Shown piece after piece: positions 17,476 through 49,377 of a stretch of 64,000 nucleotides of DNA. The stretch is from the NCBI GenBank assembly GCA_904063045.1, contig CAJFCJ010000033.1, positions 124,001-188,000 on the forward strand, written 5' to 3'. The notes under the pieces were generated by a model. That model had not been told where the DNA came from. It made no database searches and saw only the letters and a program-made list of their open reading frames with translations. Made by a program: the position numbers and the translations under genes. This DNA is from Dimorphilus gyrociliatus. Its lineage: Eukaryota > Animalia > Annelida. Positions within the stretch are counted from its first letter, which is position 1. Every line of letters begins with the position of its first letter.

Positions 17476-18331
17476 GGGTAATCGGAATTTAAGCTTGAAG
17501 TTAAATAGAAAAAGTAGTCATATCATAAAAGATAGGCACAGATTACAAACATTAACAATTAATAGTACTCTCATTATATATGCTTCTTTTAATTCATAAA
17601 TAGCTTATTAATTTTAAGAATGCTTACTATAGTTTGCCATTATAACTTTTCTTTATCCGTTAAAGAAGAAATATCAAGTTCATTCTTTAGAGAATCTTCA
17701 TTCTGACATAATCCAGAAATTGATAAATTAGAAAAGACTTTTCAAATACACTATTCAATTTTGAAAAGACGAAGAGAGAAAAGGAATGAAAGATATAGAG
17801 ATAGGATACACAGTATTTGCAGATAGATAAATAGATAGATAGAAGAAAGAGATAAAAGAAAGTGTCTAGACAGTAATCTTAAAGATAACTGGAGACTAAC
17901 CGAAAAAAGTTAGCAATGATCTGGAAAGCCAGCAACTGAAAGAGAGAATGAGAGAGAGGCACTTTTCGTAACGCCATCAACCGGCGTTTATTGTCATTAT
18001 AATAGAGAGAGAGAGAGAGAGCGATAGATAGAGAGATAACTATGCAACGGAAGAACAAGATTAAGAAAATAAGGAATAAAGAATGAAGAAAGTGGATGAA
18101 ATGGATTTGATAAAATGTTTGATAATGAACTGTATTCAATTCATATAAATTCTTAATACTGTATACATAAAATGAAAGTTGAGTAAGGAATAAATACAAA
18201 ACATACAGTATATACTGTATATATATACTAATATATATATATATATATATATATATACTATGTAGTAAATATAGGAAAAATACAAGAGTTTCATCTGCAA
18301 ACATGGAAATAAACATTTTAATGACAGCTAA

Positions 18332-25200: not shown

Positions 25201-25997
25201 ATGAAACATCTAATTAAATTTCTTTTTAAAAATGTTAAAAATAAATTTGTTTTTTTTCGTGACATGTATACAATAACAAGAGTTTTAGATAAGAACCAAT
25301 TTGAGAAAAACAGAGAGAGAGAGAGAGAGAGAGAGCAGAAGAGATATAAGAGAAGCTTCATAGGTAGCTGGTATTCGTATATGCGTATCTACATTTGCCG
25401 CTGAGGTAGAAGGGCAGTGTAAGTAAGAGAGGAGGGGGAGGGGGCAGAGAGAGAGGAAGAAAAGAGGGATAACCTGAACATAAATATCTCGTTAAGACTA
25501 TTTACCCTCAGAACACGCTGGACCCATAATTAAAGAATATTTCGATTGTTCCATCAGCTCGTATAGAGCTGATATAGAACCTCCTTTTGAACATTTTGAA
25601 TCCTTCCATTCTATTCTGAATGAATTAAAAAAATATTATTGGATTATTTAAATATAAAGATTATTATATAGTTAATACGTCATATATACACCTTATATTA
25701 TGGATTATCGATTTTCATAAAAGAAGAAAAAAAATATATACAGTATATATATTTACAGTAAAAACGCTGTACATATTGCATATTTTATCAGATAATCCAT
25801 GGATTAAATAAAAAGTATTACTCGAAGGAATAACTCTTATTAATTTTTTCAATAGCCAGCTCCAAAGCTCCGATACTGGATCCTATCGTGGGAATATCTT
25901 GACCTTCTTCCGGCAACAATAATGCTACTTTGATTCCATTTACAAGTTGAATTAATTCTCCAGTAAGAAAGAGAACGTACAAAATGTGAGTAAGCAT
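18332..25997 (-). CDS. Receptor-type guanylyl cyclase 1 (signal peptide, ANF-receptor ectodomain, TM, kinase-homology domain, cyclase domain)
   Basis: Signal peptide [96 protein letters not shown], cyclase [13 protein letters not shown]|[31 protein letters not shown]. The Glu and Cys specificity residues indicate GTP use. Confidence 0.95.
19017..19052. repeat. (TA)n microsatellite; representative of many intronic (TA)n tracts
   Basis: Direct reading of the dinucleotide run. Confidence 0.9.
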
Positions 25998-42100: not shown

Positions 42101-45100
42101 CTTTTTTTTAAAAAGTCACAGGCGGACACTCAAAGTCAATATAGCGTATCAGGGGTATCAAGAGATTCGAAGTATGGCACAATTAGTAAAAAAATGAATA
42201 AGTAAGTAAACCATTTAAAAAACGAATTAATCATTTTATAAATAAATTTATAAATTCTCCCTCCTCTCCCTCGATTAAAACTCTTTCATTTCCTTTTCTC
42301 ACTTATTCTTTTGTTTATCATTTTCTTTCTTTCTTGTTTTATTTTCTCTTTAATATGTTTGCTTTATAAAAAATTGTTTCTCTTTAATTACAATATAGAG
42401 CGAACTTGAAAGGTGGCGACGCCTATTTGTTTGGTGCTGTTCCTGATACATCGCATGAAATCAATCATAGAATAGTGGTATGTTTGAAGTAATACATACG
42501 TATATGTATATGTATATATAATATCTATATATGGAGTATTTATTGCACAAATTTTGCCTTATAATTAAATATTTTATCAATACTATAGCATTCAATAGAA
42601 GGCCCTATGTGGGAAGAACCTGCAAATCAATATACGTGTATTATATCATCACCAACAAAAGAGAGTAAAATGAAGGGGCTAAAACATTTTATCGCCTATA
42701 AATTAACACCATCTGCAAATGTACGTATTATCTTTATAAATTAATTGAAATAATTGAATGGTTTTTTTTTTCTTTTTTCTTTTAACTATAACAAAAAAAT
42801 ATTTTTTTCTCTTTTTTTTTCTATTTTCTCTATTTTGTTTTTCTTTTTTTTTTTATTTTCAAATATCCAAAAACAATAACAAAAACAAATTTATAGACAG
42901 GAGAGGTAAATATTCATTAAACTTTTTTTTTTTTGGAAAATTCTAACTTAAAAAAGCAAAAAAACACAAAACACGAAAGAAAATTAATGAATAAACGAAG
43001 AATATAAGAAACATTTCTTTCCTTTCGAATTATTTTGATCTTTATCTATTTATCCATCTATTATTATTGTTATAATTTACTATTTTAAATTAATCAACAC
43101 TCTATTAGCTTACAATTTCATTGATTTAATTAAATCGACAACAATAAGAAATTATATCCTACGCTTTTATTAATTACTCTTCTGATAATTGTTGCTCTGT
43201 TTTTTTTTTGTTTTTTCTTTAATTACTCTCTTCTCACTCTTGTTCACTTTTTATGATTTAGAATTGGATGATAAAAGTTTAATTTTCTTTCTTTCATAAT
43301 GTTTTTAGTTTAGTGGAATTCAAGTTTCAAGACGTTTTAAACAGTTCGATTGGCTACATCAACGCCTAATCGAAAAGTTTCCAACTTGTCTTGTTCCTCC
43401 ATTACCCGATAAACAGATATCAGGTATATTTCAAATGATTATATTATATAATGTACAATTTAACAAAGATTTAAGTGCATCGACCATCAATACAATTACA
43501 CTCCGTTAGAGTGCGCCCTAATGCATAATTTTCTTTTTTTAAGGACGTTATGAAGATGATTTTATCAATGAACGAATGCGTCAATTACAATTATGGGTGA
43601 ATAGGTTGTGTTTACATCCAGTCATATCGCAATGCAAAGTTTGGCATCATTTCTTAAAATGTACGGATCTAAAAGTATGGAAGACGGGAAAGAGATCAGC
43701 TGAAAAAGACGACTTTCAAAATGTAAATTTCTTTCATACTGTGGGTGTACCTTCTCAGCCTCTCACGGTAGAACAAGTGTATGTTTTTCATTATTTAACA
43801 TCCTTAAATATAGCCCTTAATGCCCTACAATTTTTAACTTTTTGGCAGAGATCCAACATTAAATAACTTCACTATGTTTGTTAAGACAATGGATGATAGC
43901 CTAAAACATCTGATAAACGTTGGTGAAAGTAGTATGAAAAGATATCAAAATTGTAAGGGTCTTTTTATAATATGGTACTTTAAGCTTTTCTATTATTTAT
44001 TTGTTTTAATTAATTAGCGTTTAGAAAGGACTTTGTAAAAATTGGCGAATCTTTGGTAGCTCTATCAAGATCGTTCGATCACGATATGAGACCAGGTAAG
44101 TTTTATTGTTTTGTTTCCTTTTTTGTACGAAATTAATTTCTCTTTTATTTAATTTTCTATTTAAAAAAAAAATATAAAAGCGTCGAGAGAATTGTCCAAC
44201 GCAATAGATAAGACAGGAAAAACATACGAAGACATTGGAGGTCTTTTCGGCGAGCAGGTTTTTGCTTCTTTCTCTCTCTCTCTCTCTCTCTCTCATGGTT
44301 TCTGTTAATTTAATTAAATTCATTTTCGTTGTGTTTTAGCCGAGAAATGATATGGTGCCACTTTTAGAAGGTTTATTAGAATACAAAGGAATGTTATCCG
44401 TTTTCCCCGATATATTGCGAGTAGAGGAGGTATTAAAATATCTTTTTCTTTTTTTTCAGTATATTTAACCAATACTTCAAACAGCGGGTGCAATGGAGGA
44501 AATTTTTTTAAACATTAAACAAATCTAAGGACACTCTATCGGTACCCTTGTATCCGCTGACTAGTAGAAAAGCACATAAAATATATACGTATACATACTT
44601 ATATATACTGTATATAAAATTTATATACAGTATAATGTATATATACAATATTTAAATTAATATGTATATATTTAAATAATTTAACATAATGTTTTATCAT
44701 TTTCTTTTTATTTTTATCCAATAGGGATATAGAGTTTTATATGTTAGCTTTTAATTTTTAAAATTTCTCTTTTTAAGTGGTAATTTAGACGCAATAATTC
44801 ACCGGAAGTAGAAAAAAAAATAAAAAAACAAACAAATATCAACATATGTTCTAGTAGTTATTTTTATTATTATCATTATTAATTCATGTCCAAAAATTTA
44901 TTAATACTGCAATATGCATTCTATTATTTATTATAGTAATGACGTTGCTCTATTTCCTGTTTATTTTCTATTTCTTTTTAACTCTTTTATCATTAGTTTG
45001 AAACTTTATTAAAGTTTTGTTTTTTTTTAATTATAAATAGTAATTTATCAAAAAGATTAGAAACGATAGCAACAACAGTAACAATGAAATAGAGGTCTTG

Positions 45101-46863
45101 TTGAGAAAAAAAAGTAACAAACATATTTATAAATAGGGATAAGGTTTTAATGATCGTCTGTATTATCTCTAGCATGCAAGGGTGACGTTGGCGTGCACGT
45201 TTACCTCGCCAAATCAGCCTTTTTGGCTTCTACAGTTTGAACTATCTCCGTGTAACTCACCAGCTTCTTCCCCGCCACTCTCTCCTCGTCCTTCTTTCGC
45301 CCAGACCCCTTATAATGTATAATAGACGTTGTTATATACATTTATACAGTATATATATACATATTTATGTGTACCGGAAGAGTGTCCAATGTAAACGGAT
45401 AGTGATACTTAGAAAAAGTAGTCTGCACTCGCTGTTTGTTTATTATTTATTACTCATGTGCATCTGGCTATTGGTATGTTTGCGTGGGTCCTTGTCGAAT
45501 AATATCTAGTTTATAAATTGTAAACAAAGGTAGATGAGATAATTTATATGAAATATGCCCAAGACTTAACACAGCTGCCAACCTACCTCAGGGAACAAAA
45601 CCATTAGCCGGTAAAAATGAAACATCTAGTTAAATATTCTATAGAGATCTTATATAACAGTTAGCTTAATTATATTATAATAGAACAAATTGGCCATAGA
45701 TGTTTTCTATTAATTTTTCTCATTCTCCATAAATAGGAACAATAGGTTAATTTTTTTTTTATTTCTAAAGAAACAATTTTTTATTCGGCTGTCTGTCTTA
45801 CTTAAAAAATTAATTAGACAACTAATCAGGTAGAAAATGAGAGCAAACGCTAAACAAAGAGGAACTCAAGTAAAAAGTTGTTTTTGAGCATCTTTCAATA
45901 ACTACTACTCGTTAGAATTTTTTTGCTGTCTAGATCTTTTTTTAAACTGTTTTTTATTCCCAATGGGACGTCCTACAATTTTGGATGTAAGCAGGGAGGG
46001 GGGCTGCGGTGGTGGTGTGAGGAGAGGGTTTTGCAGTTTTTGCTGACTTTGTAGAATTAGAAAAAAAAAGTTTAGACGTTTCCGTAAATCCTAGAAGTCT
46101 AGTTTATGTGTACTAAGTTAGCCTAGGCGAATATGCTTGTATTTATGGAAAGGCATTAATAACAGTCTATTATTTATAACACTAACGGAATGAGAGTGCA
46201 TAGCTATTTTAGAATGTTGCAGTATGTCGGCTGTTTGATTCATTGAGAGTGTTAGTGCGTAATGTTGTTCTTGTTACTCCATTACAAAACAGACATCATT
46301 TTTCACTTCCGAGTTGACGGTCTTATCCTCGGGCAAAGATTAATCATGAAATTGTGCACAAAACGCATGATTCGTTTGTAAGGTGTTACTCTTGACTCTT
46401 GTTGACATACACAATATATTGCATCTGATAAAGTAGTCATATTCACATACAGTATATAAAATGTATACACCTTTTGTATTAATCGATATATTTATCAATA
46501 TGTGTATGTATTTGAACAAAAAAAAAAGAAAAACCCCATGTCGTTTTATTTTTTAAATCGGCCTTTCAGAATTTTTTCGTTAAACAAAATTATGAAAATT
46601 AATAATATTATTTCTTATTCTTTCTTTTTCAGAATTTAAGACAAAAGTTAGAAACTGTTAAAGCAAAAGAAATCGAATTAGAATCGGCAAGGACAAGAGC
46701 GGATGTGATTACCTATGCCACCTTAGCCGAGCTAAATCACTTCCATAGACATCGCGTTGCCGATTTTCGGATTTTAATGCACGGTTTTATCAAGGAGCAG
46801 ATAAGATTTTACGAAGAAATTGTCTGCAGACTGAAAGATCAACTGCCAAACTACGAAACATAA
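39198..46863 (+). CDS. SNX9: Sorting nexin 9/18/33 family (SH3-LC-PX-BAR; SH3PX1 ortholog), about 16 exons
   Basis: MANELK|ARVLYDF..GDGWC..GLAPKSYIE (SH3), DDWDEDEDWDDD acidic motif, PX SRRFKQFDWLHQRLIEKFPTCLVPPLPDKQISGRYEDDFINERMRQLQLWVNRLCLHPVI, WKTGKRSAEKD, and BAR C-terminus ITYATLAELNHFH..FYEEI. Confidence 0.95.
45236..45322 (+). CDS. Candidate alternative exon coding part of the SNX gene: FELSPCNSPASSPPLSPRPSFAQTPYNV-stop
   Basis: Acceptor cctttttggcttctacAG at 45234-35. The phase-0 frame matches the upstream donor at 44430. The segment is GC-rich within an AT-rich intron and is followed by double stop TAATAG. Confidence 0.55.
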   Translation, partial: FELSPCNSPASSPPLSPRPSFAQTPYNV

Positions 46864-48073: not shown

Positions 48074-49377
48074 ATGTCTAATTCGGGAGTTCTCTTGATC
48101 GGGCTTGCGTCGTTCCTGAACCGAGTGCTGGAAAGTTTTGGTATGAGCCTTCAAAGAATTTCGAAAAAAGCAATTGTCGATGGAAATTCTGGTCGTCTGG
48201 AAGAATGGGACGAAGGTTTCGACGTACTATTGAAATGTTTCCGGCGTATGAAAAAGCAACTGGGTTTCTTAGGTAGCGTATCAATAATTAAGCGTCTCCA
48301 GAAATTACTGGACTCAAAAGTGGAAATTTCGAAATACGTGAAAGAAAACCCATTGGCTATGAGGGTAAGTGTTCTTTTTCTTTACTACACGTGGCTTAAC
48401 ACGTCTAACTCTACACCTGTTTTTGAGTAGTTGTAATTAAACATTCATTGTCTTTTTTCAAGTTCAAGATTGTAAGGCCAATTTTTATAATAGGCCTACC
48501 AAGAAGTGGGACGACTCTACTCCATAGGCTTTTGTCGCAGGACGATAGGCTAAAGGCTCCACTCCAATGGGAAGTATTGTATCCGACTCGAAAAGATAGC
48601 CGGGACACGATAGATATGGTTCAAGATATCCTAAAGTATATAGAGAGGTCGTCGCCGGACTTTAGGAAGAAACACGACCAAGGACCGTACATGGCTGAGG
48701 AGTGTGAGGTACTATTAAATAGATGCGGTATATTCGGTGACTTTCCGGCACAGTTCGACGACACTCGGGAGTATGCCTCTTGGTTCTGCAAACAGAACTT
48801 GGACCAGATGAAAGAGAGATATGAATATTACAAACTACAATTGCAAGTAATGAGCTATAAGCAAAAGTTAAATCCTTGGGCGTTTATATTAAAATCGCGC
48901 ATTCATCTCTTTCATCTGGCCTCGGTTAAAGCGGTATTTCCTGAGGCAATGTTCGTTTGGACTCACCGAAATTTAGACGAGATAGTACCTTCATTCTGTT
49001 CACTAGAACTTTCGGCTTCACGAGTGATGGGGGTAAACAAGCTTTCGAAGAATGAACTGGGTCGAAATAGCTACCAACATCTAGTCAACGCAGCCAACAC
49101 GGCAGCCGACACAAGGGCGAATACAGAGCTGCACTGCGTCGATATAGACTACGAATCGTTGATTGAAGATCCAATCAAGTACATAAAGTTGATCTACAAC
49201 GAATTGGACTTGGACTACAGCGACGACGATTTTGCGAAACATCAGAAGTTCTTGGATGAAAATTCGCAGCATAAGTTTGGTAAGCATGAATATTCTTTAG
49301 AAGAATGGGGATTGGATGAAGAGAGCATCGAAAATGCTTTCGACGGCTATTTGCGAATGCAGAGGAATTACCTCTGA
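48074..49377 (+). CDS. PAPS-dependent sulfotransferase, bacterial-type Sulfotransfer_3-like; 2 exons (intron 48365-48462 or -48468), about 400 aa
   Basis: 5'-PSB loop PIFIIGLPRSGTTLLHRLL, PLQWE, AEECE, ILKSRIHL, 3'-PB region VWTHRNLDEIVPSFCSL, DIDYESLIEDP, GKHEYSLEEWGL. Donor AGG|GTAAGT joins ORF 48074 to ORF 48448..49377 in frame. Confidence 0.9.

Follow-up and report, generated by a model that had tools for sequence, protein, structure and literature searches.

In Drosophila the use of splice sites is modulated by long-range RNA structures within introns (Raker et al. 2009, PMC2724269), and the Nmnat stem (PMC13092977) belongs with them: short complementary boxes, conserved in diverged introns and hundreds of nucleotides (nt) apart, lie beside splice sites, so that their pairing loops out or hides an alternative exon. 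In human ATE1 a single element can pair with either of two conserved partners that exclude each other, and which of them it takes is believed to determine the splicing outcome (PMC7797038); in Dscam1, 14-3-3xi and srp an upstream docking box near a constitutive donor has more than one downstream selector partner (PMC12962786). Here we analyze the last intron of an SNX9/18-type gene of the annelid Dimorphilus gyrociliatus, which lies in a 64-kb stretch of contig CAJFCJ010000033.1 (the window, in whose coordinates all positions are given). Two boxes shortly past the 5' splice site of this intron, A and B, are complementary to boxes A' and B' in a strongly conserved mid-intron block 0.7-1 kb further on, and box C is complementary both to A and to the first bases of that block. 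Judged from the sequence, the A:A'/B:B' pairing is probably a working RNA fold, and inclusion of the block as a protein-truncating exon may depend on this fold. The intron is a credible candidate member of the group of introns with long-range RNA-structure splicing control, and the locus as it stands is a well-supported candidate and not a demonstrated mechanism.

The SNX boxes share with the Drosophila and Nmnat cases their shortness, their spacing, their conservation amid diverged intron sequence and their position beside splice sites, where pairing would loop out or hide an alternative exon. Those cases are backed by many genomes, compensatory changes and mutational tests, whereas the SNX intron is compared with one relative, shows no covariation and holds an exon that is a candidate only; its right-hand boxes, moreover, lie inside that candidate exon, and not in the intron beyond the exon. 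With ATE1 it shares the one element with two mutually exclusive conserved partners, here A with A' or C. ATE1, however, has a mutually exclusive exon pair that was tested by mutation and antisense oligonucleotides, whereas the SNX intron has a single candidate cassette exon and prediction alone. The first-pass annotation of this DNA had likened the intron to the docking/selector competition of the Dscam1 type. The two are alike in the upstream box near a constitutive donor with several downstream partners, yet the likeness stops at the exon array: Dscam1-type genes carry a mutually exclusive exon cluster with a selector before each variant, and the SNX intron has neither, with one candidate exon in their place. 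Furthermore, the SNX partners lie downstream of the candidate acceptor, so that pairing would hide the exon and not activate it.

Poison cassette exons offer another comparison. They are highly conserved, carry a premature stop and are coupled to nonsense-mediated decay, and the classic cases reside in self-regulating splicing-factor genes. The SNX block is like them in being conserved above the level of coding exons, in its AG/GT framing and in an in-frame stop 151 nt before the 45473 junction; it differs in that SNX9 is a membrane-remodelling protein and not a splicing factor, and in that inclusion and decay of the SNX exon are only predicted. To our knowledge no such element has been described for SNX9-family genes, as far as a literature search that was neither aimed at SNX9 nor exhaustive can tell.

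Complementary boxes and their predicted alternative folds

The exons of the gene match a PX domain and the sorting-nexin BAR domain (Pfam BAR_3_WASP_bdg), which is the SNX9/18/33 architecture, and the exon calls in the related species concur. Among the introns of this gene seen in the window the last one is a size outlier (2203 nt, against about 65-200 nt for the others). The sequence strings from which the first-pass annotation had built its long-range pairings are all present where it had placed them. A and A' pair at 15 of 15 positions with one G-U, and B and B' form 16 pairs, one of them G-U, out of 17, the remaining position being A-A, just as had been proposed; the two helices share one ungapped register, with spacers of exactly 36 nt on either side. 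The spacers had been described as non-complementary. This holds for most of their length, which is unrelated, but the minimum-energy fold adds a 9-base-pair (bp) A/U helix between 44503-11 and 45409-17.

A search of the window allowing up to three mismatches returned no further copies of A or B beyond the two known sites of each, where chance would give 0.19 (A) and 0.04 (B) such matches, and in about 30 kb of DNA of the relative A and B occur at the orthologous sites only. Calculated duplex energies are -26.6 kcal/mol for A:A', -28.0 for B:B' and -22.9 for A:C in the window species, and -25.8, -21.4 and -23.4 kcal/mol, respectively, in the relative. When A is ranked against the whole intron of either species, A' is its best partner and C its second best; the best intron partner of B is B' and that of C is A, again in both. 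For A, B and C alike, 300 shuffles that preserved base composition yielded no box with as good a partner energy in the intron of either species. The complementarity of A/A' and B/B' is non-random, lying far above these shuffled controls.

The A:C helix comprises 12 bp, two of them G-U, in both species. With its 5' part (ACCCTTGTAT), C is complementary to 45174-45183, over all 10 positions in D. gyrociliatus and over 9 of the 10 in the relative. The G-U pairs in A:A', B:B' and A:C, five in total, can form on plus-strand RNA only, which points to the SNX precursor messenger RNA (pre-mRNA) as the acting molecule, rather than an antisense RNA or DNA. Element D fared less well: it had been presented as nested with A and B, and proved to be a chance-level 7-bp match in a different register, unpaired in the minimum-energy fold, whose partner has changed in the relative, where nothing equivalent occupies that position. 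A Rfam scan of the whole window at gathering thresholds gave no match on either strand, and a permissive scan of 44300-46700, also on both strands, returned two chance-level matches in TA-rich sequence and nothing else.

The TA-rich parts of the long inverted repeat consist of a palindromic motif, TATATACAGTATATA. With up to two mismatches this motif gives 38 strand-matches (~20 sites) in the window against 0.7 expected, for example at 18209-18223, 25735-25749, 44602-44616 and 45341-45355, and it recurs in introns of the relative, where it breaks assemblies. It may represent the end of a dispersed repeat or else a palindrome with a regulatory role. Because the TA-rich arms are built from this window-wide motif, they are not specific to the locus.

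Ensemble folding predicts two alternative, mutually exclusive states in both species, in line with the earlier proposal that pairings of A compete. For the segment that starts at the donor and ends shortly after the block, the partition function gives pairing probabilities of about 1.0 for A:A' and 0.8-1.0 for B:B' in both species; for the full intron, again in both, it gives 0.87-0.91 for A:C and no more than 0.08 for A:A'. Minimum-energy folding of the initial 1.08 kb yields A:A' and B:B', with the helix between C and 45174-83 nested directly inside B:B'. That last helix (44544-53 with 45174-83) had been cast as a rival that favors inclusion; as it nests within A:A'/B:B' and covers the first bases after the acceptor at 45172, it belongs to the long-range state and would work with A and B, not against them. 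A separate feature of the fold predictions, common to both species, is a purine-rich stretch several hundred nt beyond the block (45985-46030 in the window, 1206-1275 in contig L001 of the relative), whose predicted partner is a pyrimidine-rich portion of the block (45277-45288 with 46018-46029 in the window). This pairing tips the full-intron fold toward the A:C hairpin; the purine-rich stretches of the two species do not align, and such low-complexity pairing could be chance.

Conservation of the boxes and of a candidate cassette exon

The locus of the relative was located through the intronless neighbor gene at 48448-49377, which led to Logan contig L001, where the gene order is unchanged. 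A PX-exon query yielded another contig from that run, L004, whose end falls within the last intron. The two overlap by 29 nt of the TA motif, and as this is a repeated motif the join is an inferred one; it gives the relative a last intron of at least 2468 nt. Coding DNA of the two species is 77-78% identical, proteins are about 80% identical and four-fold degenerate sites 67-77%, and most of the intron is unalignable. The penultimate coding exon reaches 97% protein identity.

Against this background, conservation over the initial 700 nt of the intron is limited, trivial matches aside, to three islands: box A, TTGTATCCGCTG (box C) and the core of B. The box A island is exact over 15 nt (44479-44493), and the C core, which had been named as the local competitor for A, is identical at 12 of 12 positions and ranks second among partners in both species. 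Of box B the first 9-10 nt are kept, which brings the B:B' helix down to 12 bp including two G-U pairs. On the right-hand side B' is identical at 17 of 17 positions and A' at 15 of 15. The A-B spacer measures 165 nt in the relative; the equal 36-nt spacing is thus not conserved, and that spacing fits an origin by inverted duplication. A further partner suggested earlier, GCTGTTTGA at 46230-38, lies at the edge of a second, smaller conserved block and is not intact in the relative.

A 7-bp helix between the spacers of the relative, seemingly compensatory with respect to the window, was discarded: chance alone predicts about 0.8 such helices for A/T-rich spacers as long as these, and its left segments are without demonstrable orthology. 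Attempts to bring in more relatives gave the same species only with a last-exon query, a more distant PX-exon match (L007) that ends before the last intron, and no match for invariant 24-mers in two exact-pattern scans of metagenome contigs.

Conservation within the mid-intron block exceeds that of the coding exons and follows the outline of a candidate exon. It becomes strong ~15 nt upstream of the AG at 45171-72, whose preceding pyrimidine tract is conserved; 45173-45322 is 93% identical, and at the other end GTATGT at 45474 is unchanged, as are the 11 nt that follow it, 45474-45490 being identical at 14 of 14 positions. AG 45171-72 and GT 45474-75 are both kept in the relative. The donor at 45474 had already been picked out in the first-pass annotation; the hidden acceptor given there, AG at 45231-45232, reads AA in the relative, and the conserved acceptor-like site is the one at 45172. 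From this acceptor on, the upstream exon's reading frame runs on unbroken in both species up to a stop, which comes one codon later in the relative, and the first 30 codons differ by three substitutions, all synonymous. Inclusion is predicted to swap the last 76 residues of the BAR domain for 49 others, followed by a premature stop. A' and B' sit in the 3' part of this single candidate exon.

Transcription of the block on the opposite strand

Two RNA runs were used: X1, a coral metatranscriptome and the only run that holds SNX exons, and X2, a single run of library type not known and without strand information. Four short SNX introns (42201-42399, 42476-42588, 43952-44018 and 44093-44179; 65-197 nt) are confirmed by spliced contigs in X1. 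These are ~98-100% identical to the window, so that D. gyrociliatus or a very close strain was present in the coral sample. SNX exon joints in X1 extend as far as 44231, with none beyond. In X2 the last intron is covered from 45084 to 46516 at a depth roughly that of the other introns of the gene.

Within this coverage two minus-strand GT-AG junctions, found in X2 only, fit a spliced antisense RNA that overlaps the block. The joint 45307>45374 has depth 14 beside an unspliced path of depth 26, and both ends of its 66-nt intron are kept in the relative; for the 81-nt intron the acceptor is kept there and the donor reads GA. Both antisense paths consist of 30 + 30 nt, the lengths that a genuine alternative path should leave in an assembly graph of 31-letter words. 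The putative antisense unit lies within 45130-45640 on the minus strand, with a TATA-like element near 45650 upstream and ATTAAA (45152-45147) downstream, the latter kept in the relative, and conservation of 45587-45610 in the relative fits such a unit. It contains a small minus-strand frame, MVLFPEILFDKDPRKHTNSQMHMSNK, the start of which resembles that in the relative. A minus-strand coding role for 45201-45341 was considered and dropped, at 1 synonymous versus 8 non-synonymous changes.

Table 1. Features of the last intron of the SNX9/18-type gene and its surroundings (window coordinates).
Feature	Position	Strand	Remarks
Penultimate coding exon	44340..44429	+	SNX9/18-type gene; phase 0, last codon complete; BAR_3_WASP_bdg profile positions 125-153
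Last intron	44430..46632	+	2203 nt, GT..AG
Element D	44468..44474	+	7-bp A/U-rich match to 45469-75; weak, other register
Box A	44478..44492	+	Partners A' (long range) or box C (local hairpin)
Box B	44529..44545	+	Partner B'
Box C, ACCCTTGTATCCGCTG	44544..44559	+	3' part pairs with A; 5' part with first bases of conserved block
Mid-intron conserved block	45158..45490	.	93-100% identical to the relative; above coding exons (77-78%)
Candidate cassette exon	45173..45473	+	301 nt; poison exon or alternative C-terminus; AG ending 45172, GTATGT at 45474; 49 in-frame codons, stop 45320-22
Antisense intron	45309..45374	-	66 nt; X2 joint 45307>45374, CT..AC; minus strand GTACAC...TAAG
Box B'	45371..45387	+	Also spans minus-strand intron donor at 45374
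Box A'	45424..45438	+	Invariant in the relative
Antisense intron	45506..45586	-	81 nt; X2 joint 45505>45587, CT..AC; minus strand GAG|GTAGGT...CTAG
Second intron block	46130..46247	.	82-90% identical to the relative; smaller
Last coding exon	46633..46863	+	76 codons + stop; BAR domain end; profile positions 173-235 of 236, E 1.5e-15

A proposed splicing switch and its alternatives

We propose, tentatively and with somewhat less than even confidence, that A, B and C are selected pairing elements of the sense SNX9/18-like pre-mRNA that set inclusion of the candidate cassette exon. The block is laid out like a cassette exon, and the role of the boxes is most likely that of setting the inclusion rate of this exon. 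A, B and C, 50-130 nt past the 5' splice site, would bind three places of the conserved block. In a clamp state C would lie on the first 10 bases of the block and B and A on two sites near its end, and the block would be folded away. In the alternative state the local A:C hairpin would release the block, the hairpin and the clamp being mutually exclusive. The clamp would bring about skipping of the exon and full-length protein, the hairpin would render the exon accessible, and the included exon would be a BAR-truncating cassette, probably targeted for decay. The sequences themselves establish the complementarity and its uniqueness, the conservation of boxes and block, and two predicted states; folding in the cell, sense splicing of the block as an exon and the way in which the effect runs are our inference.

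Several observations weigh against this proposal. The full-intron minimum-energy fold contains neither A:A' nor B:B', for which reason box-by-box duplex energies and ensemble probabilities were used in its place; folding of RNAs of 1-2 kb is unreliable, and the results mean two states of similar stability. The check for compensatory changes proposed in the first-pass annotation found no double substitution in a pair-by-pair table of the two species: every between-species difference falls in the left-hand (5') boxes, all are one-sided and the core pairs never vary, although two sequences are too few to settle the point. Because no change is two-sided, the case is one of conserved complementarity from a single relative. 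The joints 44429>45173 and 45473>46633, diagnostic of the exon ends in Table 1, were found in neither X1 nor X2, where coverage of these positions is poor and gaps are uninformative. The candidate frame as a whole shows 5 synonymous versus 6 non-synonymous codon changes, which is weak coding evidence, and the peptide of the candidate exon has no match among 1.84 billion representative proteins and no Pfam match. Finally, the span conserved by blastn is 45137-45609, with weaker conservation running on beyond the sense donor to 45609, and the constraint on the block may be partly owed to an antisense gene: as the block is transcribed and spliced on the minus strand, part of its conservation is perhaps antisense-derived.

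This last point leads to the alternative to which we give most weight, although we consider it unlikely: that the block is mainly an independent antisense gene, with a short spliced RNA of about 350-400 nt and possibly a small open reading frame, and that the boxes serve a sense-antisense relationship. Self-folding of the sense pre-mRNA at A'/B' could, for example, compete with a sense-antisense duplex, with no control of a sense cassette exon. The two X2 joints with CT..AC ends and 30 + 30 nt each, introns of 81 and 66 nt that are sized like the other introns of the gene, the flanking TATA-like element and retained ATTAAA, and a short minus-strand frame (MV..PEILFD..PRKHTN) similar in both species all favor such a gene, as does the 45137-45609 span, which fits the antisense unit better than the sense exon alone; boxes A and B, moreover, nearly copy the antisense RNA's own sequence. 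The RNA evidence, however, comes from one unstranded run of library type not known, at about the depth of unspliced intron, the first antisense donor is GA in the relative, and the antisense exons have several frame-breaking indels and no long open frame. An antisense gene also leaves two features unexplained, namely the pairing of C with A through G-U pairs possible on the plus strand only, and the conserved pyrimidine tract with the AG at 45172. A combined scheme, which we consider improbable, would make the last intron a three-player switch: a bistable fold, A:C versus A:A' plus B:B' plus C on the acceptor, would set inclusion of a poison exon, and the antisense RNA, with its near copies of A and B, would displace these boxes from A'/B' in trans, so that SNX9 dosage would be coupled to antisense transcription, or to a physical cue, for instance temperature or elongation speed.

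The pairings could also merely aid removal of an overlong intron, in a genome whose introns are very short, by looping out about 900 nt and so bringing the splice sites effectively closer together, with no alternative exon involved. We find this rather doubtful, more so than the antisense gene. The last intron, at 2.2-2.5 kb in the two species, does dwarf its neighbors of 65-200 nt, and no more than 50-130 nt separate the left boxes from the 5' splice site, but the right-hand boxes are mid-intron, about 1.2 kb from the 3' splice site, so that most of the distance would remain; the 93-100% conservation of the surrounding 330 nt and the conserved competitor hairpin A:C would have no explanation either. 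Still less credit goes to the inverted repeat as a functionless relic of an old inverted duplication or of a foldback or miniature inverted-repeat transposable element (MITE) insertion. A single inverted duplication predicts A and B in one register with equal 36-nt spacers, and the flanking TA-rich arms pair too. On the other hand, the boxes are conserved as islands while spacers and flanks have diverged beyond alignment, and they persist in the relative despite its longer A-B spacer; complementarity is confined to blocks between unrelated 36-nt spacers, and no target-site duplication was found at the outer ends. There is no second copy in the 64 kb of the window or in about 30 kb of the relative, and no visible dispersed repeat in either. 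An origin by duplication with later recruitment is possible, but absence of function conflicts with the conservation. Least probable of all, in our judgment, is that the boxes act as DNA, serving as paired sites for proteins that bind an intronic regulatory element or the antisense promoter region. They are indeed conserved in sequence beyond mere pairing, and the A/T-rich second conserved block (46130-46247) resembles regulatory DNA; such sites would, however, require both arms to retain two different motifs in mirror-image order, most of the changes that distinguish the arms are transitions by which G-U pairing survives on one strand only, and box C is complementary to A and not a copy of it.

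Two further features of the region deserve mention. The second intron block is A/T-rich, with a 3-nt indel and without a coding pattern, and contains GAGAGTGCAT, which is similar to box A. The intronless neighbor at 48448-49377 is a sulfotransferase-like gene (Pfam Sulfotransfer_3). It has a single match at 81%, from the related animal; the remaining top matches are proteins of bacteria or metagenomes, at about 30-34% identity, and horizontal transfer may have brought the gene in.

If the cassette-exon proposal is true, the SNX intron would be a compact, easily mutated case of competing long-range structures that control an exon outside insects and vertebrates, and this in an annelid with a small genome, where an intron of 2 kb already stands out. 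The locus also suits study of an overlapping antisense RNA versus an intramolecular fold. For the SNX9/18/33 family, key endocytosis adaptors, the proposed fold would mean a built-in control of dosage or isoform.

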